From Pocillopora damicornis (lineage: Eukaryota), in NCBI RefSeq assembly GCF_003704095.1, contig NW_020844806.1, positions 124,001 to 188,000 of the forward strand: a stretch of 64,000 nucleotides of DNA, written 5' to 3'. The notes beneath the pieces were generated by a model. That model was given only the letters and a program-made list of their open reading frames with translations, made no database searches and was not told the DNA's origin. A program made the position numbers and the translations under genes. Positions 3,001-59,111 of this stretch are shown in pieces. The stretch's first letter is position 1. Each line of letters opens with the position of its first letter.

Positions 3001-5649
3001 AAATCGTAAGTGATATCTTTAGGTTGTTTTTGAAACCTCTTTAAGGTCCATGACCTCCCATTAAGCTCAGATTATAAGTCTGGTTAACTAAACATATCTC
3101 ATATCTATGTTTCTCACGCATTTTTTGAAAGTATGGTTTATGCGGTTTTGGTATCGTAACGTTTAAAGGGTTCTCATTAGTTGCCTATAGTTGCATAAAA
3201 TAGTGTAATATTTTGCGCCAATTTCAAGCCTCATGTTTCTCAACATCTTGAAGATAAATATAACCAAATTTGATCCTAGCATTTGGTGAACTTAAGCAAA
3301 AATATCTTGCGTAAGTAATAATCCTTATTGACCGGCTGATTTTCAGTGGATTACATATGCACCTTCCTAAACCTTATTTTCCCTGATGAATTCAAGTTGC
3401 AAATTTACTTAGGGTTAGAAAAGGAATACGGAAACACATTGAAGGGAAGTTCTTGTCACTTTTCAATTTCAGTGCTACGATATCAGTCATGGGAAGTGGC
3501 TCAGTTTACGGTTCACAGTTAGACCAACCCTAACAAAATGCCATAATCCCCCTAAATTATTTATAAAATTTACATCAGTTTTCTAAGGAAAAAAAAAAAT
3601 TATGCATTAAAAGTAACCTGGAGATTCGAGCCGTACTGAGCCAACTTCAGAGCAACGTTGTGTTCGAACACGCTTAACTGAGACAAATGGCCTTGTTTTC
3701 TGCGTTTAAAGCTTTAGCAACACAGACGGCCATGTGTCTACGACATTAGCCAGGTACTTTGTCAAATCATTGTTTACCGGCCTCCTTTAGTTTTTATAGC
3801 CGAAATTTAGGTGATTCCTGAACAACCCCTCCTTCAGACAGTCTTTTTGATTGATTTGTATCAGCCTTATTTCGATTCCGTTTCCAAATGAAGATCTTTT
3901 TACCAAGCTCCTCGACTATTCTGACGGATGGCATTCCGACATGTATCTGAGAATCATGGGATGGACTTGTTCATAACAACACGGCATATGATGAACAATG
4001 TCTGCTTTTCACTAACAGTGGCATTTGTGGTTTTCTAACTACTTAGAGGTTGTTGCACTTGACTTAGTAGCTCTCTAACTTTGATTGCATTTTTAAGTTT
4101 ATTTTCTTTATCTAACTGTTGCTGCTGCTTTCAACTCTTTTTTTGCTCGAATTGGTTGTAGTGTAATGCTTTGCTTTCTCTCAATTTTCCTATAGCAAGG
4201 AAGTCTTACATCGGTACAGCTGAGATCTTGTATTAGGAACTCATCTATAATCATGAGCTTTTTGACCGATTCTAGCTGAATGAAACGAGTGATAATCGCC
4301 TTAAGCCGGCTTATTCCCAGTGTTATTTCTTCTCACTTCAAAGAGGAAGATAGGCTATGTTCGGCATCTCCTTGGGACGAGATGGAATTATCAGGCATGA
4401 CTGAATAACAATGCTTTCCATGTGTCAGTTTCGAGATTAGATCATGCCACTCAATATAAGGATCCGCAGGCTTCATTCGAAACAGTTAGACGCTCCCTTC
4501 ATTTGCTTATGCTACAAACTTTCTTCTGGCGTCGAATTGTTTTAACCATAAACGATGCAATTTAAAATTGCATGTGCTCTGTTAAGGGCATTATTTATTA
4601 CTGTGATACATGTTTTTTTTTCTTTCACCATGGTGATTCTGTACAAGAGTAATCTGCTCAACCTATAAACTCGTCAATTTTGTTTTAAATTGACTGTGTC
4701 CTACTCTACTCCAAATCTCTTTAGGGATTGCAAAATCAAGCCATACACTAGCCCTGTTTGAATTTGATCAATCACTAAGTAATTGAACGGCAATTTTCAG
4801 TTGCTAAGTTTTAAGATGATAATCACTTGGGCGCTTGATTGGCTAAAGTAAGTCTCTGAGATCGTCATTTTCCGGTCGTAACCACAAAGTTATCTTGCGG
4901 GTTTGCCAGCGCTCGAGAGTTTATCTTAAATCTTATGCCAAGCCAATTTGTGAAATGGAATTAATTTGTTTTATCACGTAATACTTGCTATAGGTATTCT
5001 CGCTTTGACTGGGATTTGTGCATGCTGTCTTCTGGCGCCGACAAGAATAAGTTTGATGAACATCATCTTAGTGACTGCCTTAATTAGCCGTAATTACAGT
5101 AAACAAACAGATGTTTAAAGAACTCGTGATCGAGAACACTCTTAAATTTGCAAACTATGTCAAAATTGGAAAGAATTCAGAGGATCCCTCGTATCACAAC
5201 ATGTAGCTCACGTCTCATCATGAATCTTAACTGCGTTTAACGAGATGTTACGCTATCACTCTCAGAAAATGACATAACCTGTTGGAAAGCTCACCTTAAA
5301 ACACGTTTTCCGCAATGAAAAGTCAGTAGAAATATGCGACTTGGACTTTTGCCTGTTGAGGTTGGGAACATTAACCTCAAACAGAACATATGGAATCAGT
5401 CGAGGGAAACTAGATAGCTGTGCAGAATTTCGAAAGAAGTTTCTAAAAATAAGTGCCGCTTTTTTTTTTTCTTTCCTTTTTAAATCAGTAGGCTCAATAA
5501 AAAGATTATAACGACAACACTTGAAAATCAACATTAACAAGAGCAAACAAAAATGACTAAGCACGCAGGAAAACCCACTTTTCGACGCATGAGAGCCAAA
5601 AAAAAAATTCCCCCCCCCCTTATTTCATATTGAGCGTTTTCTGGATTAA

Positions 5650-42982: not shown

Positions 42983-43381
42983 TTAAACGAAGTCGCTGCT
43001 TTGAATCCAACGCAACTTTGAAGTCAGTGTCGCGCATTTCTGTTCATAATCTTTTTTCTCGCTGATAACCTTTTTCAATTCTCCTTTTACTTTAGATATC
43101 TCCAGCTGAAGATCTTTATTTTCCTGGATGATATCCTTCTCTTTTGATGAGTTTTTCTTTCGACACTTCAGAGCGTACTTGCGATTCTTTAAGATTCGCC
43201 TTCGCTTTCGAACCTTTTGGACCAGACCTTGAGGAAGTTTGCGAAGTCGCCTGTTTAAAGCTTGAATAGACATCGTTTCAAGTTTCTCGTCACTCAATTT
43301 TGCGATTAGAGAAAGATAACTGGAACTTCCATGCTTGGATTTCTTGGCTTTATTCTGCTCAGACGTTTCTCCACGAACCAT
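42983..43381 (-). CDS. Maf-type bZIP transcription factor, class A (copy 1), single-exon CDS; start uncertain
   Basis: Extended homology region (EHR) LSDEKLETMSIQALNRRLRKLP, basic region KRRRILKNRKYALKCRKK, leucine zipper. First in-frame ATG is 43381; the frame stays open to 43525 without an ATG. Confidence 0.85.
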   Translation of the reverse strand: MVRGETSEQNKAKKSKHGSSSYLSLIAKLSDEKLETMSIQALNRRLRKLPQGLVQKVRKRRRILKNRKYALKCRKKNSSKEKDIIQENKDLQLEISKVKGELKKVISEKKDYEQKCATLTSKLRWIQSSDFV

Positions 43382-43595
43382 AATCCTTATGCCCGAGTAA
43401 GCTTTAAAGAGATCTATCGCATTCAATCCACTCTCTTCGCCGGTTAAAATTTCCTTCTCAAAACCGCACCGCTCTTTGGTTGACCTACCTTCGTTTAAGG
43501 AGTAAATCGGGAAAAGTGGAACCCTTCAATGGCCGTCGTTAGTTTGCCTTTATGTTTATGTCGCATGAAGAATCAAAACAAGAAAGAATACTTGT

Positions 43596-43639
43596 CCAAT
43601 CAGATTGCAAGTTAATGATTAAGGGTAAGGGGATTCCCC
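43596..43639 (-). promoter_or_regulatory. kB site + CCAAT box upstream of Maf copy 1
   Basis: GGGGATTCCCC 43629-43639; CCAATCAG 43596. Confidence 0.7.
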
Positions 43640-44067
43640 GTTCGGTTTATTTTAGTAAAGTGGAAACATATCGTCATAGTAAACAATTTTCGTTCGTATC
43701 CCTCGTTAACCGACTGAAGGTAGTTTTATTCCATCGACAATGAAACGAATAGTTAGGTATCAATAGAATGATTACCCAGAGTCTTAAGAACAGTTTCAGT
43801 CGCCGAACTTTTCAAGAGCTGAACTTTATAGACCGACGCAAATAACTGTCTTGCCAGCCGCTAACGTATCAAATGTTGACCTCGGTTAGCCGTTCCAGAG
43901 TCGTTTCTGACTCAGTTTCAGGACTTCGAGTGGTTTCAGGATGAAGCTGTTATCCTGACGTATGCCTTAACATCAACACACGACGATTTTGGCGAGTAAA
44001 TCAAAGCTGCGTCGAAGCCGTTGCTCAGACAAAATTCACAGCTTAGCCATGCGTTAAATACGGTTAA

Positions 44068-44270
44068 CCCTTTAACTCCCAGACCAAATTTGTCATTCTC
44101 CTTACTGTCAACCATACAATTCTTATAATGTTGGTTCAAATAATTTGGCATTGGATCAACTTATTATCCCCAAATTGATAGTTTTCTTTATTCTCATCAC
44201 TTGTCTGGTTGATATTGTATCGATATTGTAAGGAGACATTTTTCTTTGTCACTCATGGGAGTTATACTGG
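44068..44270. mobile_element. MITE with TTAA target duplication (piggyBac-like)
   Basis: TTAA-CCCTTTAACTCCCA ... TGGGAGTTATACTGG-TTAA (degenerate right TIR). Confidence 0.75.
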
Positions 44271-45655
44271 TTAAGCCTTTAAAATCGCCCTCTTAATCTA
44301 TTTAAATGCCAAACTCTTCATGTACAGATTTAAAGGATTTTTTCCCAGCAATTTCGGCAAATGAACATTATGATCATACCTACGGTTTATTACAGCTTAA
44401 GCGAGATGCTATCGAACTTAAGCGGTAGCTCTGGCTCCAAATCCTTACTTTCTATGTTTTATCATCACTTAGAAACCTAATGAGGAAAATGGAACGTAAG
44501 TTAAAATATTGAGTCGAAAAATTCTCCGGATTCTGAAATATTCGTTATTCGGGATGTTTTTGTCTATTACTCAGTCATTAAAGATTCAAAGGTCTCTCCG
44601 TTTCCTCATTCCACTTCAAGGTCTCTTGTGATTCTAATATTACAACCTAAGTAGATTTACGACAACATATCAAAGACGTCAGTTACTGATAACATGCATG
44701 AACATACATTAAATTCAGGACTCTCTTTCTTATACATGCGGTATCAAGAAGTAGAAGAGTTTGGACGGAATGGGGGATGGGTGGATAGGCATTTCTATTC
44801 AAAACTTCCCTTCCCTCCCCTCACCTGCGCCTTACACATTGCCGAGAGTAATTTTACAGAATCCGAGATTTTGACGGATTAGAATCTGACAACCAAATGC
44901 CTATTTTAATATCGGCTCTCCAGGAGAGTCTCTTTCAGTTTCGATAGATGATGTAGTCATTTTCAGTTTCTGTATCCGTGTAAACATGTTATTGGCCGGA
45001 AGTATGGAGCGGGGCTCCTTCGCTCAAGCAGTAGTGTAGACTGGTTGCTTCAAAAACGCTAGAAACAAAAGAAAGCTATTAATTATGTTGTGAAATCGAT
45101 GGCGCGTGGAAATCAGACACTCGCGCGTTTGAAGTGGCATATATCACTACTGTGTTTAACTCTTATTTGACGGGAGTGAATCAACACAGTGAGAAAATAC
45201 TGTGAAATACTGAAAATACACAGACAATTGCATTATAAAGAAAGGTTTTTAAGAAGGAGAGAACGTGAGTTGCGGAGGAAAAGTTTCTTCAAGTTTATTT
45301 CTTTTTTTTAACTTTTTATAATTTCTTTCCGTTCTCTATATCTATAAAGTTGACTGTTTAATGGACCATAAGCTTTATTTTAACCGCTTGACTCTCAATA
45401 TGTACGCATCTTACATCTTTACAGAAATGACTTTATTTAATCTTCTGATCAATCATATCTTTTACTTCTTTAGCAGATGCAAATTTTCCAGCTTTCTCGA
45501 ATTCCCCCTTCTTAGAATAGTTAAGATGTCTCTGAGGCTATGCATATGTTCTGCGAACGATTAGTCATTAAATACATTTAATTTTGACAAAAAAAGGTGC
45601 CATATGCATATTACAAACAATACATCTTCGCAAAAGCTAAATTTTATCACCCAAA

Positions 45656-46237
45656 TCAGGCATCTTTTCTCGGGATTACCATGCTCTGTTTAAACAGCGT
45701 AAAGGATTGTTGCAGCTCCATATATTTTTTCTTGTAAGTCTCTTTCTCTTTCAAAGCTCTCAGTAATGACCATCTTCCATCTTCCACTTGTTTTCTCAGC
45801 GAAGTGTTCTCGTTGATAAGATCTTCCTGTTCTTGCTGTTTTCGAAGACGGCAAGTCAGGGCGTAACCCCGGTTTTTTAAGTTGCGTCTTCGTTTTCTTA
45901 TCTTCTTGGCCTCGTCCCAAGGAACATTTCGCAGAAACCTGTTCAATTCTTGCACCCGCATGTTCGCAATTTCTTCGTCGTTCAATATTTTAACATCTTT
46001 AGGAATCGATTCATCGTCCGATGACTCTGAGGTCGTGTTGTCATCGTCCTGGTGTACTTCTTGGCTTGTCTCTCCGTCGAAAAGATCTTGAATATCGCGA
46101 CTGTCATCTCTGTCGGCCATTTCGCTGCTCTTCTTCGCAGATGAAACGTTTCCAACAACCCACGAACAGCTGAAAGGAAGATCTGTTTCTTCACTGGCGA
46201 GAAACAAATCTGGAAAATCCATAGAATCTTCCTCCAT
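45656..46237 (-). CDS. Maf-type bZIP transcription factor, class B (copy 2), single-exon CDS, 193 aa
   Basis: Acidic N-terminus with DIQDLFDGET; EHR LNDEEIANMRVQELNRFLR; basic region KRRRNLKNRGYALTCRLRK; zipper; ACCATGG Kozak context. Confidence 0.93.
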   Translation of the reverse strand: MEEDSMDFPDLFLASEETDLPFSCSWVVGNVSSAKKSSEMADRDDSRDIQDLFDGETSQEVHQDDDNTTSESSDDESIPKDVKILNDEEIANMRVQELNRFLRNVPWDEAKKIRKRRRNLKNRGYALTCRLRKQQEQEDLINENTSLRKQVEDGRWSLLRALKEKETYKKKYMELQQSFTLFKQSMVIPRKDA

Positions 46238-46369
46238 GGTTAAACGTGAATCTGTAGGTATTAAGTTTGGCTGAAGCTGTAATATCTCAACAGTTTACAT
46301 AATCAAAAGAAAGATGGCGATGTTCCGGCAAAAAGCCGTAATGTAATACATACGAGTGAACTACTTAAG

Positions 46370-46464
46370 CCAATCAGATACCTACGATATTACATTTTGA
46401 TAAAGGGGAATCCCCTAACGCTATTCCAGGAAATTCTCGAATGGCTTTCCATGTATTCCGAGAA
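46370..46464 (-). promoter_or_regulatory. CCAAT + kB + HSE/GAS-like elements upstream of Maf copy 2
   Basis: CCAATCAG 46370; GGGGAATCCCC 46405-46415; TTCcaGGAaaTTCtcGAA 46424-46441; TTCCGAGAA 46456-46464. Confidence 0.7.
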
Positions 46465-49400
46465 TAAATCAAATTAATTAGCATACTGATTTTCCCTAAG
46501 TGTATGTTTCTTTCTACTTGACTTGTTCCGGAGGCATCGTTTCTTCATCATAAGGATGAAAGAAACGAATTTCTCACTAAAGTTTATTGCCTGCGACAGG
46601 AGCCCATCGCCCAGGAGCCTACGACTGTTACCGCACGAAGTCATCTTTTTAAAGGAAATGGTTGTCATGGTTTTAGCATACAATCCAAGGAATAACTTCT
46701 AATCAAGTGAAGTGAAGTGATTGGTTCAAGAAACGGGAAAGGGGCATTCAATTTCAAATCATGTATCGACTCGAGAGTGAGGCAGATAATTGCGCAGCAG
46801 CCCGACGACATTGAGACATTTTGTTTCATCATTCATCATTAACATTTCATTTATGTAAAAATAAAACAGGAAAAATTTAATAAAAAATATACGAGGTGTA
46901 GAAAATAGTTAAAAAACACAATTAAGATAGACTCACTTACTTTTTGGCAGTTGGATGGTAAGTTACTTCTTAGTATTTGTGGTGCATGCGCCGCCGCGGT
47001 CAAGTTTACTTAACCAAGTTGGTTTCCTGTTTTTAACGGCTGTTGCTTGGGATTAAATATCTCTATTTCGGTTCAAGCTGAGCTGGCCGGAAAACATGAG
47101 CCATGTTTGTCTCTATATTTGCCATGAGTAGTAGGAGGAGCTCAGTGAGACGAGATCGACCACAGCCAAAAAGTAAAAAGTACCAGCAATGGCCGGGTAT
47201 CAAATATAATCAATCGCAATGAACAAAACAATGAAACAACAATTGATGGTACCACGAACCTTTTTGAAAATTTTATTTCGAAACAGCCAGTTTTTGGCCA
47301 AAGGGGACAAAATTCAAGAGGACTCTTCAAGAAGCAACGTGATCACGATGCAATAGGCTACAAATACTTTACTAATGTACTAATGTCGTCAGTTACTTTT
47401 TGTTTTTCCCTTNNNNNNNNNNTTTCGCCATCACGTAAAGGTGCCATATCATTTTCAAAGTCAGGTTATCAATGTATCAAAATTGATTTGTTTTTATAAA
47501 AGACTGAGTGATCAGAATCACAGTGACCTTGATGTGTAGGTTATGATCACAGTTGAGGGATCTTTCCTTTCACTCCAAGTGACTGTTTTGACCTTAAACT
47601 CTGTAAACAGGAGAACACCAAGGAAGTGTTAGAAAATTGTAAGCCGAGTCAAGGATTGCAAATAAAATTTGAAAAGATAAAAAAAGACGCTGTTTCATAT
47701 CGCCGGCAACAGTCGAAAAGAAATAAACTCGTAATAACGTTTAGTGTAAAACTTGATAATAAAAATTCGATCGAGCATTGTACCAAATATCATGAAGTAA
47801 TGCCAGATGAAAGATTTTATAATTCAATGTCTGAAACAAAATCCTCAGCGCAGATCGAGACGAATTATGGTGTTTTCGTTTTAGCTGGTATCAGTATCGT
47901 TTACTCTCATTCTCTCTTTAGTCAAGTGGTAAGGTTCATGTATAATCCCGTGATCAGGAAGTGTGAATTTAATCAAGTTGTCGATGAGATATGATAAGTA
48001 ATCAGACCGTTACGTGTCTGATTTAGCATTTTATCAACAACGGTAAATGAACAGGAACGTACTGTAGGGAAGAAGTGTCAGCTAATAATATAATGTCATG
48101 GCTATTTTCCGCAAGTTTCATGGAGTTTAGCAGTTCTGCTTAGTTGTCTGATTTTACAAAATTATTGAGATACCACTAGTGCCCTAATTGGTCAAAGTCC
48201 TATCCTTTATTGCACCGGTTAGCCCATAGAAAATTTAAGTTTATATTGTGAAAGCAATAGGCGTACTAGGCCACGTGGGAAGTTGGGAAAACGCTTAAAA
48301 AGTTTGAACATCACCCGTCTCCGGCTCGTAATTAACAAATTCTTCTCGTGTTTTGTCAGCATGTAGCGTGAGTTATTACGCCAATAGAAAGTGAGGTCTA
48401 TATGTTTAATGACTAGACAATTACAACTTAAGTAGAAATAAGGTTGATAATGAATGCAAATTTTTTCAACGCACATTAATTTCTGGCTCGTGATTAATGA
48501 CGCATTACAAGTTTCCGGTGCGCTTGACAAGGCTGCCTTAATTACTTTTGAATAACAACATTCCTTGAATTCTAGGGGTGATGAACTCTTTCCAGATAAC
48601 GTTAGAAAGGGAAAAATATTTCCTTAAAGTAGCTATTCGTCAAGATAAACTAAAGTGAAACAATGGGTTTTTACTTTTGAAAAACAGTTCAAAACTTAGA
48701 TGTTCGGACTGATTATCGCGATAGATGGAAATAAACAATTGTCCTTGGAAGAAATTGAATTTACAAAAATAATAATTTCTTTTCTTCTTTCGCATCACTC
48801 TGGTAATTAATTATATCTCTATAGCTTATTATTTTTAACTTCTTTTTTGCTTTTGAGGCCGGGAATAATCAAGCAAAGGGTTTAACTTCGAGAAAAGTGG
48901 TAAAATGTGTTTTTCAGAATAAACTGGCGAGTTTGCGTGACACAGTTTGAATGTCGCTATGTTAACAATGGGTAACGGTGTCCATATTTATATATATATA
49001 TCCATAAGATTCATTTTAGATGAGGAAACGAGCTTTTAATATTTGTATAAAATCTAAACCTGAACTCGTCTTGTGACCCCATATTCCTTTCAGCTGTCAC
49101 TCGTGACTATCACGCCTCGAATGGTTTATGTTCCCTGATGTCACGCACGTCTCCTGCTTATCTCAATAACAAAATGGTCACATGTTTGTTTAACAAAGGC
49201 ATTTTATTTCGACCTCCACTTTAGGGAGCAAAATAGATTCGAATAAAAAAAATCCTGTTGATTGTGATGACTAAAGGTACGAAACGAGTTGACGTTCTGT
49301 ACGGGAAATTCACACAATTATGGACGAAATACACCGCGATGATCGCATGCAAAGATTCCACGAACCCAGTTCGAGTTCCTCGAAAGCCGCGTGCGATGAG

Positions 49401-50496
49401 GTTTAAGGAGTGGCTAACACGCAGTCTTTTTAAGCGAGGTTTTCCATTCATCCCTTTCTGCTGTAAAGGAATACTTACGGATTTTCAAAACACATTTAGT
49501 TTGAAATATTTGAAGTACTGTCAGCGTACTTGGTGCGAATAAAATGTATCAGTTCGTATCTATATTTTCGTTTCAACGACTCTCGACTCTCTCCATTTCA
49601 ATTCCACCAGACCCTATGATGAAATAGGGTGCAATTACGGATAATTATGTATTTTTTGCTATCAAAAGGCAATATACACATAAGCAATGAAAGAAACATG
49701 AATTAATACCGCTTCTTCAACTGCTAAGTGTAAAAAAATAAACACCCATACAATCTGAACTTAACATGTTATAATTTATTCCGCAGATAACACTTATCAA
49801 TTACATGTATTTCTCATCTTTTGGCGGAATCATTAATTACAATTTCTTTCGTAAAGTTAAAATAGACCACCACAGATTTAAATAGCTATTTTTGGTAGCA
49901 ACACGACAAAATTTCCGTGGAATTTGATAACATTTAACTGAATTGAATTTATCAACAACTGGACAACTGTAGCATGTCAGGGTTCCAAAATATAGTCAAT
50001 GTACACAATTCATACATCTAAATCAATCTGACTGGCTACTTATTCATCAAAAGTATCCAAAGACTTTACAATTTCTTTACCATAATACATTACTCAATAT
50101 GCTACTGAGCTTTGTGAACGCCACAACCACTCTAAACTGACAAATATTCAAAATATATTATATTCAGCGGTTTATGACCGATAGAATAAATGGAAAGCAA
50201 GGTTTCGTAAAAGATGAAGATCATTCAATTATATTAAAAACTTCTGAGAAACAGCTCTACCTTTGCCTCGATATACTTTAAGCGAGACTCGTTGCGCGAC
50301 GAAGGGTCTAGTAAAGTTCAATGTCACTAACATAACTAACGTTCGCTGCGTAAATCCTTGAGCGTGGGTTCTTGGACTTTGCGAAATTCTAATTACAGTC
50401 AGCTAAGTTACTTTCGTGATCATGTCATCCACAATATAAGTGCATGGAATGGAAATGTGTTCATGAATGTGGCCTCAAAGCCATTATTACCGATAA

Positions 50497-51057
50497 TCAC
50501 GAAGACAAGTGCCGCTTACGGCTCGAAAGCAATGCGTGGAGTTGTTCATATTTCTTCTTAAACATATCTCTGTCTCTCAAAGTATTGTAAAGGTTTTCCT
50601 TCGCTTCTTTCAACTCCAATTTCAATCGCTTGTTTTGCTGTTCGAGGCTTTCTTTCAGTGCCGTGCGCCTTTGTCGACAGAGTGTAGCATAGCCACGATT
50701 CTTCAGGCTTCTCCTCCGTTTTCTAATTTGCTTCGCCTCCGCTTTTGGCAAATTCTTCAACTGCTGGTTCAGAAGTCTTATAGAGATACTAATCAATTCG
50801 TCGTCGGTAAAGGGTTGGTTTTTGCCAACTTGCAAATCCAGTGGGCTCTGAGGCTCGCTACTGGCGATTGATTCGGTCTCGAAGTTGTCCAAATCTAGTC
50901 TTGTTTGCAACAAAACATTCTCGAAGTTATCTTCGCCAACCAGATCTCCCAGTCTATGGTTGTGTGACCAATCTGGACCGCAAACATCGCTCGAGAAATC
51001 CCTCTCCAAAATTTCGTCCATCGGGGACATTTCTGGGAAAAACTCGCTGTAATCCAT
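50497..51057 (-). CDS. Maf-type bZIP transcription factor, class C (copy 3), single-exon CDS, ~186 aa
   Basis: Likely start MDYSEFF (51057, AACATGG); acidic N-terminus; EHR FTDDELISISIRLLNQQLKNLP; basic region KRRRSLKNRGYATLCRQRR; zipper. Confidence 0.9.
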   Translation of the reverse strand: MDYSEFFPEMSPMDEILERDFSSDVCGPDWSHNHRLGDLVGEDNFENVLLQTRLDLDNFETESIASSEPQSPLDLQVGKNQPFTDDELISISIRLLNQQLKNLPKAEAKQIRKRRRSLKNRGYATLCRQRRTALKESLEQQNKRLKLELKEAKENLYNTLRDRDMFKKKYEQLHALLSSRKRHLSS

Positions 51058-51150
51058 GTTAGCAAAATGGGAATCTAACCAAAAATGAGACACATGATGG
51101 TACGATTTCTCATCAAAACTCAGCTCCATACGGGGTTGCTTGATTTTCGT

Positions 51151-51215
51151 CCAATCATATTGCGTGATTTGACTACATCTCACCTGCCTGTCAATCATGA
51201 AAACGGGGAATCCCC
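51151..51215 (-). promoter_or_regulatory. CCAAT + kB upstream of Maf copy 3
   Basis: CCAATCAT 51151; GGGGAATCCCCTAAC from 51205, the same 15-mer as at copy 2. Confidence 0.7.
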
Positions 51216-51393
51216 TAACAGTTTCTAAGCTTCTCAGCTGAAATGTCCAAGCACGTATTAGCTTTTGCAAGGTAAAATAGATCTTGGAACCTTTAAAAAT
51301 TGTTTCTTGTCCCCTGAAAACGTCCGAAAAACATTCCCTCACCGGAAAAAACAAAACTTTTGCGATTTTTTTTTCAGATCTAAAAAAAATATC

Positions 51394-53144
51394 ATTACGT
51401 CATATGTAATATTCTTACAATTCTTTGGTTTTCGTTCGGTTTTCAACCTGAATAAAATTTTCGTGGGCAATTAAGAATTTCTTTCTCGAAGAACAGTTCT
51501 AATGTTTCAGAAAACGTCGCGCAGAATGCGTGTTTCGTATTTCACTGGCCACAGCTGTTTGTTTATCGTACAGGTTCCACCTTAAAAGAGAAGGGAAAGT
51601 CCCTTGCCCTCTGAGGGTCAAAACAATGAAAAGCAGGTATGAAAAATATGCAGCGAACTCATCCTATCGAAATTGTGAAATCGGTAAACTGTAACATGTG
51701 AAGTATAAAGAAATTGATTTCTTCGCGTGGAAAATCTTTTAGGAAAAGGAGAAAATTGATTTTTACATCAAAGATCCCAGAGGGCGGTTGATCAGAGACT
51801 TTTAAGTGTCACGCATTCCAAAAAGGGAAAAACCCCTTCGGAAATGAAACAAAACCGCCGACTTAATGTCAGATGCAAATTTTCACTTTCGAAACTGAAA
51901 GTAAATTTCCCTGATTCCATTGCCCGTAATATTTATTTCTATTTTGGCGATTTGGCCTATAAACATTGTGCTTTTGATCATTTAGTTCAAAACCATATTT
52001 ATATTGCCAAATCTTAGCCACCATTTTCGCTCTATCGAGACTTTCATTTCAATTGCCTTGAGTAGGGAAATTTCCCTTAACCTCTGGGGGTCAACATAAT
52101 CTGAATTGCGACATGCACTGATGTTGCTATAAAATTTCGATCGTCACTGCTGTGAATTCTTATTTTTCAATTTTATTTAAATATATTTTAAAACATGGAG
52201 AGAAGGACCGGGGAAGGAGAGAAAGTAATTACTACTTTCTCCTTTCAATGTTCATCACTTTATATTAAAAACATGTCGGGCGAAGAAAAGATCGATTTAT
52301 TTAGGGGTCAATATTTATCTGCTGTCTTGTGTTTTCATCTTACTATGATCCAAAAATTATGCAGAAGTTGCATACTGTCTCGTTATGAAGGAAAGAACAG
52401 GATCTTAGCTGAAAAATAAAAATCTCCGTTACTCAGGCAGCAAAAAATAGACATAAAACTCTTGAATGATATATAAGTTTACAATCGCTATTACAGCTAT
52501 GAGTATTTTACATTACGACGTGACGTCTTTGGTCAGTATATTGGTATTAGATCGGCAAGGAAGAAACAAGATAAATCACTGTATTAAAAGTTGACTTCTG
52601 GGGATCAAAATCGACTCGTTAAGCGAATATTGGAAGCATGTTTAATGCTCAGCTAATCTATTATGCATGCGCAAAGAACGAAAACATTCAGAAAGGGAAA
52701 CTCCCTGCTGTTGTTTCCACAAGTAGAGGTCATTAATAGATCGAAATTAGTTTCGATTCTGGGACAAGCAGAGAGTTATTAAAACGGAGATGGGAAAAGA
52801 AAAATAATATATTGAAAAACGCAACATTTAGTTACTAGTGCAAGCCGGGTAAACACAAGTCAATCGAAGCTTCTCTTTCGTGAGGGTTTAGCCCTTCATC
52901 AGCGCCAAATACGATCATAGATGATAAACTCTATCGAGCTTTATTATTAGGTAGCATGAAGTGTATTGCATCACCAAAGAATCATAAAATATATTAGGAA
53001 AAAAGGCTCTCAGATGCGTTCGTGCTGCATTCATTTCGATCTCTCTTTGTAAAAAATAAATACATCTACCGACTGAAACAAAACCGAAAACAGACGCTAT
53101 CATTGGCCGAACTGATTAACTTGGATGAAAGCATGGGATTTCCC
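51394..53144. promoter_or_regulatory. Divergent control region with clustered kB, IRF and bZIP motifs
   Basis: GGAAAGTCCC 51594-51603 (reverse complement of GGGACTTTCC), GGGAAAAACCC 51825, TTTCACTTTCGAAACTGAAAGT 51881-51902, GGGAAATTTCCC 52065-52076, GGGAAACTCCC 52695-52705, ATTGCATCA 52965-52973, GGGATTTCCC 53135-53144, ATTACGTCAT 51394-51403. Confidence 0.65.
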
Positions 53145-53268
53145 TAGTATCGTTTGTGTTTGAGAGGTACTTTCCCGCTCTGGGCGTCTTTAATGAAACC
53201 AAACCTTTGCCCTCTGTTGCATTGCTTTTATACTGAATAGCATATAGTCTGTCGATCGCAAATTTGTC

Positions 53269-53853
53269 ATGGAGAAGAAGGAGTCTTACCTTGATTCATT
53301 TGGAGAGCGCGAATTTACTTCGAATAACACGCAGGGTCGACGAGCGCTTTCTGATGGTGTTTGTTATACACGTATGGTTGAAGGACTCCTGCAGATCACG
53401 CCAGAAACTATCGTGAGTCAAGGACGCCTTACAGAATCGGGTAATCTTCACCAACAATTAAATCACAATCGCTCTCTTTTGCTCAAAATAAATAAGAAGC
53501 TTTTCGACGACGAATACCTCGAAAGGACGTCGATTCAAGAGTTGAACAAGAAACTTCGTCGGCTGCCTGAAGGGCTGATTCGGAAATTCAGAAAAAGGAG
53601 ACGAATTCTCAAGAATCGTAAATATGCTCTAAAGTGCCGACAGAAAGGAATAGAGCGACAGAGCTACATCGCACATGAAAATGCAGCCCTTGAGCGAGAA
53701 ATTCTCCAAGCAAATATGGAATTGAGAAAAGTTATCCAGGAAAGGGACAAATATCGACAGAAATACGAACGATTGATAGGTGCTGTTTCTACTTTGAATA
53801 CATCAAGAGAGTTTTCTATGGTGGACTATGGCAGAATTGTAACGGAGCCTTGA
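53269..53853 (+). CDS. Maf-type bZIP transcription factor, class A (copy 4), single-exon CDS, 194 aa
   Basis: EHR FDDEYLERTSIQELNKKLRRLP; basic region KRRRILKNRKYALKCRQK, matching copy 1 except one residue; zipper. Confidence 0.92.
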   Translation: MEKKESYLDSFGEREFTSNNTQGRRALSDGVCYTRMVEGLLQITPETIVSQGRLTESGNLHQQLNHNRSLLLKINKKLFDDEYLERTSIQELNKKLRRLPEGLIRKFRKRRRILKNRKYALKCRQKGIERQSYIAHENAALEREILQANMELRKVIQERDKYRQKYERLIGAVSTLNTSREFSMVDYGRIVTEP

Positions 53854-54000
53854 CTGAAAAAGGAACTTAAAACTTGCCAAATAATAATTTCCATCGCTCT
53901 ACTCTTATATATCATTTGATTTTTGTTGTCAATTTCTGTTATCCTTGGAACACTCTGGCTCCGAGACTCTTTCAATGCTTTCAAAAGCGAAAGATATTAC

Positions 54001-54030
54001 GGGATTCCCCCCCTACGTCATCTTCATTGG
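54001..54030 (+). promoter_or_regulatory. kB + CRE-like + inverted CCAAT upstream of Maf copy 5
   Basis: GGGATTCCCC 54001-54010, TACGTCA, ATTGG 54026-54030. Confidence 0.65.
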
Positions 54031-54179
54031 GCAGAGCTCTAAATCATTTCTGTCATTATTTCAAAACTTGATTGACAGCCGGAGAAAGTCACGTGAGGCA
54101 ATATCGCAGCATCGTAACTTTCGTATCCACGGCCATGTGCTCTCGGTACGTTCAGTAATAGACTGACAGCGGACAAAAC

Positions 54180-54701
54180 ATGACCGATGAAGAACTTTAT
54201 GTCGATTTTCCCAAAATGGACGACACTTTTGATGCTGGGTTGGCTGAAGATAAACCCAGTTCTTATTGGGTCGGCTTTGAACCGCTCGTTGCCGAGGAAG
54301 AAAGCTCTCTAACGCAGACGCACCTATATTCTGTGCGCCCAGATTGTAACACAACCAGCTCTACGCCTAGTGAGCAGATCACCGACTTGGAAATCGCAAC
54401 ACTCCCTATACGCGAACTTAACAAACGCATGAAGAACCTTCCCCAAGCAGAGGTATTGCAAATCAGAAAACGCAGGAGAAGCTTGAGAAACCGCGATTAC
54501 GCGACCAACTGCCGGCGAAGGCGTACAGCGGTTAAAGAGAGCTTGCTGACAGAAAATCAGCGATTGCAAGATCAGCTACGGGCGGCAAATGAAGTCCTTT
54601 CCAGAGCAGTAAAAGAAAGAGACTCTTACAAAAGAAAATTTTCAGAACTACATAAGGCGTATGTCACCTTTAATAGACCTAATGTTGCAAGAAAATGGTA
54701 A
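54180..54701 (+). CDS. Maf-type bZIP transcription factor, class C (copy 5), single-exon CDS, 173 aa
   Basis: EHR ITDLEIATLPIRELNKRMKNLP; basic region KRRRSLRNRDYATNCRRRR; RRTAVKESL matches copy 3 RRTALKESL; zipper. Confidence 0.92.
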   Translation: MTDEELYVDFPKMDDTFDAGLAEDKPSSYWVGFEPLVAEEESSLTQTHLYSVRPDCNTTSSTPSEQITDLEIATLPIRELNKRMKNLPQAEVLQIRKRRRSLRNRDYATNCRRRRTAVKESLLTENQRLQDQLRAANEVLSRAVKERDSYKRKFSELHKAYVTFNRPNVARKW

Positions 54702-57043
54702 CTTTCATGCAATGGCATTCAGTATTGGACCGACATATTAATTTGAGTAGATTCGATCACCGGTCTCACAGCCACAGAAACAATAATAATACGTGTTACT
54801 GGAACTTTCCTTCAAAATTTTATCATGTGAAGTCGAATTAAGGTTAGTGTGCTCCAAATGTATACCAATTACACGAGCTATTTTGAGTAATATTCCGAAA
54901 GAATTTCATCATCAGTCATATTTCTGAGGCTTATAACGCCTGGTTATTTCAATTGGAAATTCCGTAAACTATAGCTTTAGAGACTCAGACACAACTCTCG
55001 TGTTTAGACATTATAGTTGCTTTTTGAATGGCTTTGTATTTCAGTCAGTGATAAAATTAACTTTACTTCAATTCACTTGATAAGCAAGAATAACAAGCTT
55101 ATTCCATTTGAATATTTATTTTTAGACCTCTTTATAACGCGAAAAGTCTAATGTAATTCGAACAATTGCGTATACATATTGTTTGTTGTTCAGAAGGGGG
55201 AAAGTTCTACCTACCTACTACTAACAATGATATCTGTTATAAAATCCAAAACTTGCTGTGGAAATTTCGTTATAAGGTCGGTAAAGATTGATTCGTCAGT
55301 TAGAGAAAATGTCTCACTGAAAGATCATTTAATACTGTTGCTGACTGAAAAAAAGTCATTTTGTGTATTATATGATTGTGTCCGTAGGCGATATTTCTAG
55401 ATAAACAGGAAGGAATAAATTTTTGAACCAAATGAATTTAGAGATATTCATGTAATTTGAAGAAACTATACTCTACTTCAATTTGATGTTGCATGCTGTT
55501 AACAAATTATGTACAAACCTGGTGTTAATAGCTTTAATAAAAAAAGTTTTTTAGGTAAATTTTGTATGCAATTGATGTCTTCAACACAACGGCTTTGATT
55601 TCAGCTTAACTCACCCTGCTTACTTTGGGTCAAAGCATTAGACAAAAGATTTTTAAAGTTTTCCTTGAGTTTACGTTTACTGATACTGCACAACTTCAAG
55701 GTGCATGATTTATCAAAGGGAAATTTCTTTGAACTAACAAATTTCAGGCAAGCCAGCAGCATGAACAGTTTGTGATGTCTCGACAAAAGTTACAGACTTA
55801 AGCAAACGTTTTCTTTGGTAACAATATGATACTGCTACTCTTTATACGCTTAGGCTAGTGACTTTTCTTCAATCAAACCAAGTGCAACCTAGAAATATTG
55901 TGACTTTACCGAGATGAACTGCTAATCAATTGTAAGTTAAAAACACTGCAGATTTTCATCCGGTTTTGTCGCGGCTGATAGGTCTTCAGCACCCATTTAG
56001 TACATGAAAAGAAGCATTGTGAGAGTAAAGTGTCTTCGCCAAGAACACAACAATAAAATTGAAACAACTCACAACTAGAACCCAGCGAGTTGATCATGGA
56101 ACCATCGTGTCTCTCAAATCGTTTTTATCAATTTAGAACCATTCGTTCATAGGGAAACTTTTCAAGCATAATTACGATTCTCTAAAGCTCGTTGACTCTT
56201 AACGATAACAGGGACGTCCCCTCTACAAGAGATATTCAATTTCGTTTGGGTTTAAGAGACTAGAAAGTGTTAAACATGAGAACTTGAGACGCACATGAAT
56301 TTCGATTCATTGAATAAAAAGAAAATTTGACTTCTTCGGTCGATAGTCGCTTAAATTGAAATGTTTTTCCGACAGTGGTCGAAATGGACGTCAAGATATC
56401 AAATCCTTTAGGAGAAAGTTTTAATGCTGGCAAAGAAAATTTTAAGTAGACCCAACTATAAAAAATCAACGAGAGGGGAAAAAACCAAAGATCACAATAC
56501 TTCTTAAAATAGGCTTTCATAACATATCCACAAACACATGAGTGCTAGTTCGACTTTACAACAAAAAAGGATACGTTGTGAACATCTCTCAGTACCACAT
56601 GAAGACCTCGAGGAACCAAGAATATGAACAAACCGCACAACAGTGTCACATCCATGTAGCAAATTGTGTAAAACGGAATATACTCCTTTTGTGTGATTAT
56701 TTGTTTGATTGCTCGCAATGTTTTGTTTTGTTTTGCGATTTCCATGCCTACTAAGTTCAGTTCATCTCCGCCTTTGCATACGTTTATGCGGCTCTTTGCG
56801 TCAACAAATAGAATTTCATTATCCATGAATAGGTTCATTTCTAGACAGCAGTAAAAGAAGTAGAAGAAAAAGGAAGGATAGCCATTAAATCTGATTAATT
56901 TCCCAAATGAAAAAGAAAAGAAAAGAAACTTGGTTGGTTATAAGAGTCTCGTTAACCCTCATGTAAGACACGACTTGTAGATAGTTTGCGAGACTGATGT
57001 AATTTTTTCCATCACCTCGTTGCTGTGTATATACTCAGAAAGC

Positions 57044-57161
57044 TTCAAGAAAATTCTCAGAACAGGACCGCGCAAGGGAATTCCCCCCGAAATGAAAACG
57101 AAAGTTTTCCTGTTTCAGAAACTTAATAAGCTATTCAGCTGCGACATTGGGGGGAAAACCC
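57044..57161 (+). promoter_or_regulatory. HSE/GAS + kB + ISRE + CCAAT + second kB upstream of Maf copy 6
   Basis: TTCaaGAAaaTTC 57044-57056; TTCTCAGAA 57054-57062; GGGAATTCCC 57076-57085; GAAAACGAAAGT 57094-57105; ATTGG 57146; GGGAAAACCC 57152-57161. Confidence 0.7.
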
Positions 57162-57236
57162 TCAGAGACTTTCACTTAGTCATTGTGATTCGCTTCTGAA
57201 AAGGGAGAAATTGTTCATCGACGCTGCATTTGTCAT

Positions 57237-57788
57237 ATGATGGAGGAAGATTTTGATGCCCTGTTCGGTGTGTACTCCACCGATGCCATGAAACACGTTT
57301 TTGAAAACCTATGGACGGAAGAGAGTCTTCTATTTGAGGAAAACAATTCTACCTCCAACACAGATGGCGACATCCAAGATCTTTTCGACGGTGAAACAAG
57401 AAATGAAGAAAATTACTCATCTTCTGAATCTGAAACTGAGAGCTTGAATCCTTCGACGATAAGCGACGAACAAATTCAAAATCTCCGCGTGCAAGATCTC
57501 AACAAGCTTCTTCGGGACCTCCCGCGGGACGAGGCAGCAAAAATAAAGAAGCGAAGACGCAACTTGAAGAATCGAAACTATGCTTTGAATTGTCGCATTC
57601 GTAAACAGCAAAAATACGAAGATCTGCTAAACGAGAACTTCTCATTGAAAGAGCAACTGGAGAGTGAGAGAAGTCAGCTAAGAAATGTCTGGACAGAGAA
57701 AGAGGCGTTCAAGAAGAAATATCAGCATTTGCAGAAGTCTTTTGCTGTCTACATGCAAAGCAAGATATCTACCGAGCTGCCGGCATGA
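57237..57788 (+). CDS. Maf-type bZIP transcription factor, class B (copy 6), single-exon CDS, 183 aa
   Basis: MMEED start and DIQDLFDGET shared with copy 2; EHR ISDEQIQNLRVQDLNKLLRDLP; basic region KRRRNLKNRNYALNCRIRK; zipper. Confidence 0.93.
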   Translation: MMEEDFDALFGVYSTDAMKHVFENLWTEESLLFEENNSTSNTDGDIQDLFDGETRNEENYSSSESETESLNPSTISDEQIQNLRVQDLNKLLRDLPRDEAAKIKKRRRNLKNRNYALNCRIRKQQKYEDLLNENFSLKEQLESERSQLRNVWTEKEAFKKKYQHLQKSFAVYMQSKISTELPA

Positions 57789-59111
57789 TGCTAAGGGCTG
57801 ACAGTCTGTGTCCATGAGCAATTCGCTATTCTATTTCATTATTAAGACTTAAATTATTCACCGAACAGTGATTGATAAACTGTAATCCAGCAGGCACCAT
57901 TATTTAGCATGCGTATTAGCTATGTTTGAAATAATTCCAGAAAGTACCACTCTTACAATTAAATTAAGTACAATGCGGGGTACAAGGGCTTACCTTGAAA
58001 TATTTCCAAAAATAGCTTAAATGAATCATGACTATCAATCAAGTGTAGAGATGTCTAAAAAGTGAAATTTGCAAACAGTAGTAACTCTTATAAAAGAAAA
58101 AATAATTGTGAAATATTTGCTTTTTGTTTCCCAAGGAGTGAGAAATAGTTGCTGTCAGAATGTACTGAAGATATGTATAAACATGTAGTTTACAAATGCT
58201 ATCGGATATTTATCGAATTATTAATAAACAAAAACACCTGTAATAAAGAGAAATACAAAGGCATTTTTGTGTATGCATTCATATGTTATTGTCTTGATCA
58301 CATCAAACATGGATCACTGTTTCATAATGCTTAAGTCACTCGCACTACCCACCCCTCCCCTGGAAATAGCACCAGTATGTTATGTAGACAGGTTGTCTTC
58401 CATTTCTAGTTTCATCGTGCTATTCAATATTTTATAGGCTTGTCTCTCTTTGTCATCTAAACTCCAGCGAAAGAAATCTTGACGAGATCATCGTCCTTTT
58501 TTTTTCTTCAACTGGGTACCACGAGGATTCCACCAGTCCTATTTTCAAGGCAGTAAGAAGTAGCAATAGATAGCACAGTTATAACAGGCGTAGACAGTGT
58601 AAGTCAATGAAAGGTAAGAATCAAATAATCTCGTAAACGATATCTCATGATTTTTTTTTTGTAATTGAAGAACAGTCATCGATTCAATATGTACATAAGA
58701 ATCTGATATGTTGCTCGTGGCTTCATATTCTTTAGTTATTTCCATGAAATGATGAAAGTTCGTTTATAATGGTGATTGATCGAAGATAATTCAGTCACGG
58801 ATGGCTGAGAGTTCAAAGGTTTTTCTAGGTAAAGTAACGCTACTTTGTTATTTGATACCGAAACGAACCTTGGAGGCTTACTTAGATATAAAGTCATAAA
58901 CTGAGGTGAAATTAAATCTTTCAAGCAATACAGGCAACGGATTATAAAATTCCAGATCACGTCAAAACTTGATCCGGTCACATGCTCGAATGAATGAAAC
59001 CACTTGTTCAAGTGACACCCATTAATTCGTGAATTTATTGTGACATTTTGACATTTTTCCATCAGCTCTAGAAAATTGAAGACTGAAAAATAGTGGATAC
59101 GAGAAGGAGCC

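Follow-up and report, generated by a model that had tools for sequence, protein, structure and literature searches.

In mammals, the small Maf protein MafF is induced by cytokines and NF-kB, and in macrophages the C/EBP-delta and ATF3 circuit provides an intronless, inducible second tier of transcription factors with a basic leucine zipper (bZIP) after NF-kB. NF-kB rises during the breakdown of coral symbiosis; to our knowledge, little is known of the genes that it targets directly in corals, and work on coral immunity and bleaching is short of defined regulatory circuits. Here, we analysed a 64 kb stretch of the Pocillopora damicornis genome (contig NW_020844806.1, positions 124,001–188,000; the window), in which an earlier note had pointed out a cluster of six Maf-type bZIP genes, here named g1 to g6. 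Positions are those of the window, and genome-wide counts cover the 234-Mb assembly of 4393 contigs. A published survey gives only 'at least two' as the number of cnidarian MAF genes, with no description of the present group (PMC4736632).

Like the genes of the C/EBP-delta and ATF3 circuit, the coral genes are single-exon bZIP genes with NF-kB-type binding (kB) sites and STAT sites in short promoters, and a first-wave factor that turns on second-wave factors is proposed for them. They belong to a different bZIP family, they are six paralogs gathered in one cluster where the others are single genes at dispersed sites, and their induction is only proposed here. The coral proteins are comparable in size to the small Mafs (MafF, MafG, MafK), several are labelled MafK-like or MafG-like in databases, and the notion that inflammatory signalling induces a Maf gene is common to both. 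Small Mafs have no region ahead of the bZIP domain, whereas 70–100 residues precede it in five of the six cluster proteins. With the large Mafs (MafB, MafA, c-Maf, NRL) the coral proteins share an acidic N-terminal region ahead of the bZIP domain, and an extended homology region and basic region with the R..N..YA..CR contacts. They differ in being only 132–194 aa long, in the features of domain content and zipper set out below, and in forming a separate clade.

The region from 42983 to 57788 contains six uninterrupted, intron-free open reading frames (ORFs) exactly at the limits that had been given for them, and every frame is intact (Table 1). All six predicted proteins match the bZIP_Maf profile PF03131 over profile positions 1–92 or 2–91, with 57–74 bits (cut-off 22) and E-values of 2e-15 to 2e-20, and the match spans the extended homology region, the basic region and the start of the zipper. 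The contact signature R-x3-N-x2-Y-A-x2-C-R is invariant in g1–g6 and in two paralogs found on another contig (C134), as is the RRR that precedes it. The genes fall into three paralog classes with one copy on each strand: g1 and g4 belong to class A, g2 and g6 to class B, and g3 and g5 to class C. Read outwards from the central divergent point, the class order is C-B-A leftward and A-C-B rightward. Paralogs share just 25–48% identity, and the description of the copies as strongly diverged yet intact was thus borne out.

The six proteins are members of the Maf family that are neither small nor large Mafs. None matched Maf_N (PF08383) in Pfam, and their clade lies apart from vertebrate large Mafs and from the group of the genome's own large-Maf-like gene (L002). 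The small-Maf-like gene of the genome (L001) also falls outside the clade, and the solved-structure matches of g2 are stronger for MafB (64.9 bits) and MafA (60.8 bits) than for MafG (53.3 bits). The basic region is not of the CNC type (NK.AA..CR), as all six proteins read NR.YA..CR and the CNC gene of the genome (L010) reads GKNKVAARLCR. In the zipper, L or I occupies positions d1, d2 and d6 and Y or F occupies d5, as in MafB, but the leucines that MafB has at d3 and d4 are replaced by small or charged residues (G, A, V or E at d3; A, V or T at d4). Loss of the middle leucines suggests altered zipper pairing, possibly between the classes. Because the proteins are neither small nor large Mafs, CNC partners for them are only a guess. 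A class B motif around DLFDGET was considered as an ETGE-type Keap1 docking site and rejected by eye, as the glycine is missing.

When 1.84 billion representatives were searched with a profile, only 33 clusters (50% identity) were returned below an E-value of 1e-30, followed by a continuum of canonical Mafs near 1e-26. In a maximum-likelihood tree of 107 domains (support given as ultrafast bootstrap/Shimodaira–Hasegawa-like approximate likelihood ratio test), the cluster-type genes form a single clade of 57 rows with support of 99/93. Within it, class A (100/99), class B (100/99) and class C (99/97) are each recovered, and the sister of g4 is Stylophora XP_022791127. In this tree, the cluster genes do not resolve as orthologs of the known dispersed Maf genes. 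Databases annotate them piecemeal, as MafK-, MafG- or MafB-like.

The cluster is conserved in other corals, the named sources of relatives being Oculina, Orbicella, Desmophyllum and Stylophora. In L014, a locus of a second coral, orthologs of g5, g4, g3, g2 and g1 are found with order and orientation retained. Cluster-type genes number at least seven across approximately 30 kb in Orbicella faveolata, and two further assemblies (L018 and L029) each have two or three that are adjacent. Clusters with matching classes are present in at least four other coral assemblies. The five ortholog pairs with L014, which share 61–72% protein identity, have whole-gene ratios of nonsynonymous to synonymous substitution (dN/dS) of 0.20 (g1), 0.16 (g2), 0.16 (g3), 0.30 (g4) and 0.24 (g5), ratios that are approximate as dS is near 1. 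By part, the values are 0.09–0.24 for the bZIP domain and 0.19–0.43 for the N-terminal region. The copies are under purifying selection and are not evolving neutrally. As synonymous sites are saturated between paralogs, the duplications are old, and as far as seen the expansion is confined to corals, in agreement with the proposal that it is an old lineage-specific one.

Each of the six genes is preceded by a kB site, located 134–258 bp upstream of the likely ATG and beside a CCAAT box. The window contains 26 matches to GGGRNNYYCC where 3.7 are expected, a number reached by none of 100 shuffles, and all of the matches lie between 43629 and 57523, inside the cluster. The proximal kB sites of g1, g2 and g3 are the perfect 11 bp palindrome GGGGAATCCCC. 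Between paralogs, the kB block is the only part of the promoters that can be aligned. Between orthologs, the conserved islands are the kB site, a CTGATTGG-type CCAAT box and, in class B, two copies of TTCNNNGAA; the STAT-type, kB and CCAAT elements of g2 are all conserved in the aligned class B promoters of other coral loci (alignment A3), and g3 shares an exact 17 bp block (51201–51217) with L014. A TTACGTCA element is conserved in g5-type and g1-type ortholog promoters; in Pocillopora the g5 copy reads CTACGTCA and that of g1 has been lost. Further upstream of g4, the composite site GAAAGGGAAACTCCC has a counterpart in L014, which has a kB site at a comparable distal place (3939). At the five other loci, a kB site lies approximately 20–180 bp upstream of the ATG in all 18 cluster-type genes examined (L014 5/5, Orbicella 7/7, L018 2/2, L027 1/1 and L029 3/3).

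Table 1. Genes, promoter elements and other mapped features of the Maf-type cluster
Feature	Position	Strand	Details
g1	ORF 42983–43426; 42983–43381 from first in-frame ATG	-	class A, 132 aa; PF03131 E 1.9e-16
g1 promoter	43596–43639	-	kB 11-bp palindrome 43629–43639; CTGATTGG (CCAAT box) 43596–43603; kB block kept in orthologs (A5)
g2	45656–46237	-	class B, 193 aa; PF03131 E 1.8e-20
g2 promoter	46370–46464	-	STAT-type TTCNNNGAA 46456–46464 and 46424–46432; kB 11-mer 46405–46415; CTGATTGG 46370–46377
Assembly gap (N run)	47413–47422		intergenic, between g2 and g3
g3	ORF 50497–51354; 50497–51057 from ATG at 51057	-	class C, 186 aa; PF03131 E 5.3e-17
g3 promoter	51151–51217	-	kB 11-mer 51205–51215; CCAAT 51151–51155; both invariant in A4
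Central conserved region	51394–51903		between divergent g3 and g4
TTACGTCA	51395–51402		exact block vs L014
Distal kB site GGGACTTTCC	51594–51603		exact block vs L014
kB-like GGGAAAAACCCC	51825–51836		exact block vs L014
Octamer ATGCAAAT, then inverted pair of IRF/ISRE sites	51869–51903		35-bp block, identical in L014
Composite ISRE-like and kB site GAAAGGGAAACTCCC	52691–52705	+	570 bp upstream of g4
g4 promoter	53102–53144	+	CCAAT 53102–53106; kB 53135–53144, kept in L014 ortholog (A5)
g4	53269–53853	+	class A, 194 aa; PF03131 E 2.4e-15
g5 promoter	54001–54030	+	kB 54001–54010; CCAAT 54026–54030; both invariant in A4
g5	54180–54701	+	class C, 173 aa; PF03131 E 1.6e-19
g6 promoter	57054–57150	+	STAT-type 57054–57062; kB 57076–57086; ISRE-like 57094–57105; CCAAT 57146–57150
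g6	57237–57788	+	class B, 183 aa; PF03131 E 6.8e-20
ISRE, interferon-stimulated response element. A4 and A5 are alignments.

The 2.2 kb of intergenic DNA between g3 and g4 is 64% identical to L014 overall, yet it includes exact blocks of 10–35 bp. The combination of octamer, IRF and kB sites, situated at the divergence point of the two arms, looks enhancer-like. Taken with this central IRF/octamer block, the promoters are composites in which kB and CCAAT elements are joined by STAT-like sites in class B and, in some genes, by a site resembling a cyclic AMP response element (CRE). The earlier idea of a shared NF-kB-type promoter holds in so far as the kB sites are present before every gene, over-represented and conserved in orthologous promoters; it falls short in that kB does not stand alone. 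Neither a Maf-recognition half-site nor an antioxidant-response element was found in the six promoters. A transposon origin of the promoters was considered and rejected, as no long repeats were found and only the kB blocks and the similarity of the coding regions recur. An additional ISRE-like element, the reverse complement of TCGAAACTGAAAG, lies between g1 and g2 (44923–44947) and resembles one arm of the central IRF pair. In the Maf cluster of another organism (L029, GC content 46%), three tandem GGGACTTTCC-type sites are found within 60 bp (5240–5298) upstream of a Maf gene.

Genome-wide, the exact 11-mer occurs 124 times, compared with 27 for its reversed, composition-matched control (approximately 4.6-fold). 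Three of the 124 fall in the cluster, and two are 120–140 bp upstream of STING genes, both adjoining CTGATTGG and one with ISRE motifs. Three of the six STING copies have a kB site 117–140 bp upstream of the ATG, accompanied by CTGATTGG in two of these and by ISRE in two. The STING promoters of the same genome thus resemble those of the cluster in combining kB, CCAAT and ISRE elements. They differ in how CCAAT is ordered and oriented with respect to kB, and the genes downstream are receptors rather than transcription factors. A single gene with a Rel-homology domain (RHD) was detectable by profile in the genome, at C998, and two kB matches, which might allow NF-kB autoregulation, lie 3.4–3.7 kb upstream of its first RHD exon. 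Local arrays of the exact 11-mer are found on C2088 (five sites), C2200, C1273 and C2633 (four each), and C2974 and C3788 (three each). On C2974, two of the 11-mers, with similar flanks, precede by approximately 0.85 kb small paralogous ORFs that lie in tandem and belong to an unknown family. Such arrays may mark further clustered, kB-driven gene families.

When the family profile was used to search the genome, 13 matches were returned, made up of the six cluster genes, two genes on C134, L001, L002, one CNC gene and two weak Jun-like matches. L001 has MafG as its best solved match (97.8 bits), and no kB site was found in the 4 kb upstream of it. L002 matches MafA and MafB best, and outside corals the proteins closest to it are c-Maf, MafB and NRL of vertebrates. 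A perfect 11-mer kB site is located 431 bp upstream of the ATG of the large-Maf-like gene (C2075; L023 5168–5178), and given this site the kB wiring may predate the cluster clade. The two genes on C134 (145097–147688; L024 5097–7688) constitute a second mini-cluster, a class A-like and a class B-like Maf gene in tandem. The first, class A-like gene has GGGAAACCCCC at -212, and no consensus kB site precedes the second, class B-like gene.

Polyadenylated RNA contigs from four studies were compared with the g4–g6 region. Contigs covering g4 and g5 run from 53141 or 53212 to about 55520 or 56170, and those covering g6, from all four studies, run from 57141 or 57213 to 58172–58260; neither set includes splice joints. 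The g6 promoter stretch (56661–57140) is uncovered in all four runs, the furthest 5' contig beginning at 57141, which argues against DNA carry-over. In three studies, contigs run through g4 and g5 together, and the 3' transcribed region of g4 (53854–54179) takes in the promoter of g5 and, with it, the kB site at 54001. Read-through or interference between g4 and g5 is possible. In the 3' untranslated region of g5, RNA contigs of other studies have a 27 nt insertion and two 10 nt deletions (at 54923, 55080 and 55465), which are likely allelic or sister-species differences.

The limits of two genes needed attention. For g3, the proximal kB site falls within the longer ORF that begins with TTG, so the true start is almost certainly the ATG at 51057, and the N-terminus can be aligned with g5 and the Orbicella ortholog from that ATG onward. 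In g1, there is no in-frame ATG before 43381, and the L014 ortholog is 200 aa. Upstream of the g1 ATG, 48 codons (43382–43525, reverse strand) are open and homologous to the N-terminus of the L014 ortholog, with the ATG absent. The ancestral start of g1 seems to have been lost, and the acidic N-terminal region along with it. The assembly gap, 1.2 kb upstream of the g2 ATG and 3.1 kb past the g3 stop, hits no ORF or proximal promoter. With this N run included, the g2–g3 spacing in the assembly is 4.3 kb, close to the 3.8 kb of another coral. Outside the cluster, an uninterrupted ORF of 1041 aa extends from 26666 to 29791 on the reverse strand. It has an fn3_4/fn3 domain (E 2e-15) at its C-terminus and lies where the window is G+C-rich, the one such stretch (GC 0.47, compared with approximately 0.38).

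We lean towards the reading that this is a coral-specific, three-class Maf cluster whose genes are switched together by NF-kB, with IRF and STAT inputs, as a second regulatory tier. The findings fit promoters in which selection maintains a p50-type kB site accompanied by NF-Y, STAT-type and IRF-type sites. The single Rel-homology protein (NF-kB), together with NF-Y, IRF and STAT inputs, would co-activate the six genes upon immune or stress signals, after which the cluster Mafs would act as second-tier regulators. Because the residues by which Mafs contact DNA (R, N, Y, A, C, R) are kept, the six Mafs would be expected to bind Maf-recognition-type sites, and their acidic N-terminal regions, which are under constraint, may activate transcription. 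The binding factor, the inducibility, and the targets and partners of the cluster Mafs are inferred. Of the earlier interpretation as a whole, the expansion, the distinct clade, the constraint, the RNA from g4–g6 and the conserved kB sites stand; promoters driven by kB only do not, and CNC partnering has been reduced to a guess.

Several points weigh against NF-kB-driven co-induction. At the level of the window, ISRE (four matches where 1.5 are expected, a count that 6 of 100 shuffles attained) and CTGATTGG (four against 1.6) are not significantly enriched, and their weight comes solely from conservation across species. A consensus kB site is absent from a related gene on another contig (L006 type). 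The tree includes only 101 columns and its bootstrap had not fully settled, the RNA contigs give neither levels nor exact starts, and g1, with its ancestral start codon lost, may be a weakened copy. The kB-like palindromes could be read by another factor. Finally, published observations on Maf genes in cnidarians hint in the direction of the preferred reading but could not be mapped to g1–g6. These include a MafB-like gene in the expression cluster of NF-kB in Vibrio-challenged Exaiptasia (PMC7654579) and two 'mafK' genes with high dN/dS in Orbicella sibling species (PMC12630909), neither tied to the cluster genes, as well as three cases that bear on the alternatives below and are likewise not tied to them. 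The literature searches turned up no account of the cluster, its standing as a distinct Maf clade, its kB sites or its conserved promoter grammar, only scattered entries for Maf genes in expression lists.

The cluster Mafs might instead be regulators of cell identity, for example in immune-like cells, kept steadily on by resident kB, IRF and STAT factors and not acutely induced. RNA contigs in four unrelated polyadenylated data sets with no known challenge are consistent with this, as are Maf-family genes that mark the naive or basal state of immune cells alongside NF-kB1 and IRF2 in Nematostella (PMC13319465). In heat-stressed Montipora, however, four consecutively numbered Maf genes rise approximately twofold (PMC8590396), and in alga-hosting cells of Stylophora a Maf-like gene rises at 48 h with innate-immune genes (10.64898/2026.07.18.739195). 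The make-up of the cluster promoters also matches that of the STING genes of the same genome. Composite kB/IRF promoters are typical of inducible genes, and we regard steady expression for cell identity as unlikely.

In another alternative, a different factor and not NF-kB reads the palindromes. The cluster would then belong to a general oxidative or heat-stress programme linked to the CNC/small-Maf axis, in which the new Mafs compete or pair with the canonical proteins. Coral papers do handle Maf genes as stress factors, STAT-type or heat-shock-like elements adjoin kB in class B, and the altered zipper d positions suggest a changed choice of partner. Set against this, the site is a textbook p50-type 11-mer that is over-represented in the genome and also marks STING promoters, and neither Maf-recognition half-sites nor antioxidant-response elements turned up in the six promoters, which makes this reading quite unlikely. 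A decaying or neutral tandem expansion, in which the shared sites are mere leftovers of duplication, could appeal to the missing ancestral start codon of g1 and to the lack of introns, as retro-copies are often intronless. It is very improbable given dN/dS values of 0.16–0.30 in all five ortholog pairs, the gene order and classes kept in other corals, the persistence of the kB block in paralog promoters that have otherwise diverged beyond alignment, and the RNA contigs that cover g4–g6.

The preferred reading, that NF-kB co-activates the cluster as a second tier, can be extended, though only tentatively. Stony corals, and perhaps anthozoans more widely, may possess a third Maf subfamily that originated as a cluster, has remained one, and is hard-wired to NF-kB, IRF and STAT by the promoter grammar that STING also has. 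It might then act as an immediate-early relay of the innate-immune and heat-stress response, with the three classes pairing by way of their unusual zippers to set a second wave of gene expression, also during bleaching. Cnidarian Maf diversity exceeds the two genes usually counted, and the cluster provides six neighbouring candidate NF-kB targets with sharply defined, conserved sites, a compact and testable NF-kB/IRF target set. Taken with the STING promoters, the cluster is a pointer to a common kB/CCAAT/IRF grammar, from which the NF-kB/IRF regulon of corals could be predicted genome-wide.

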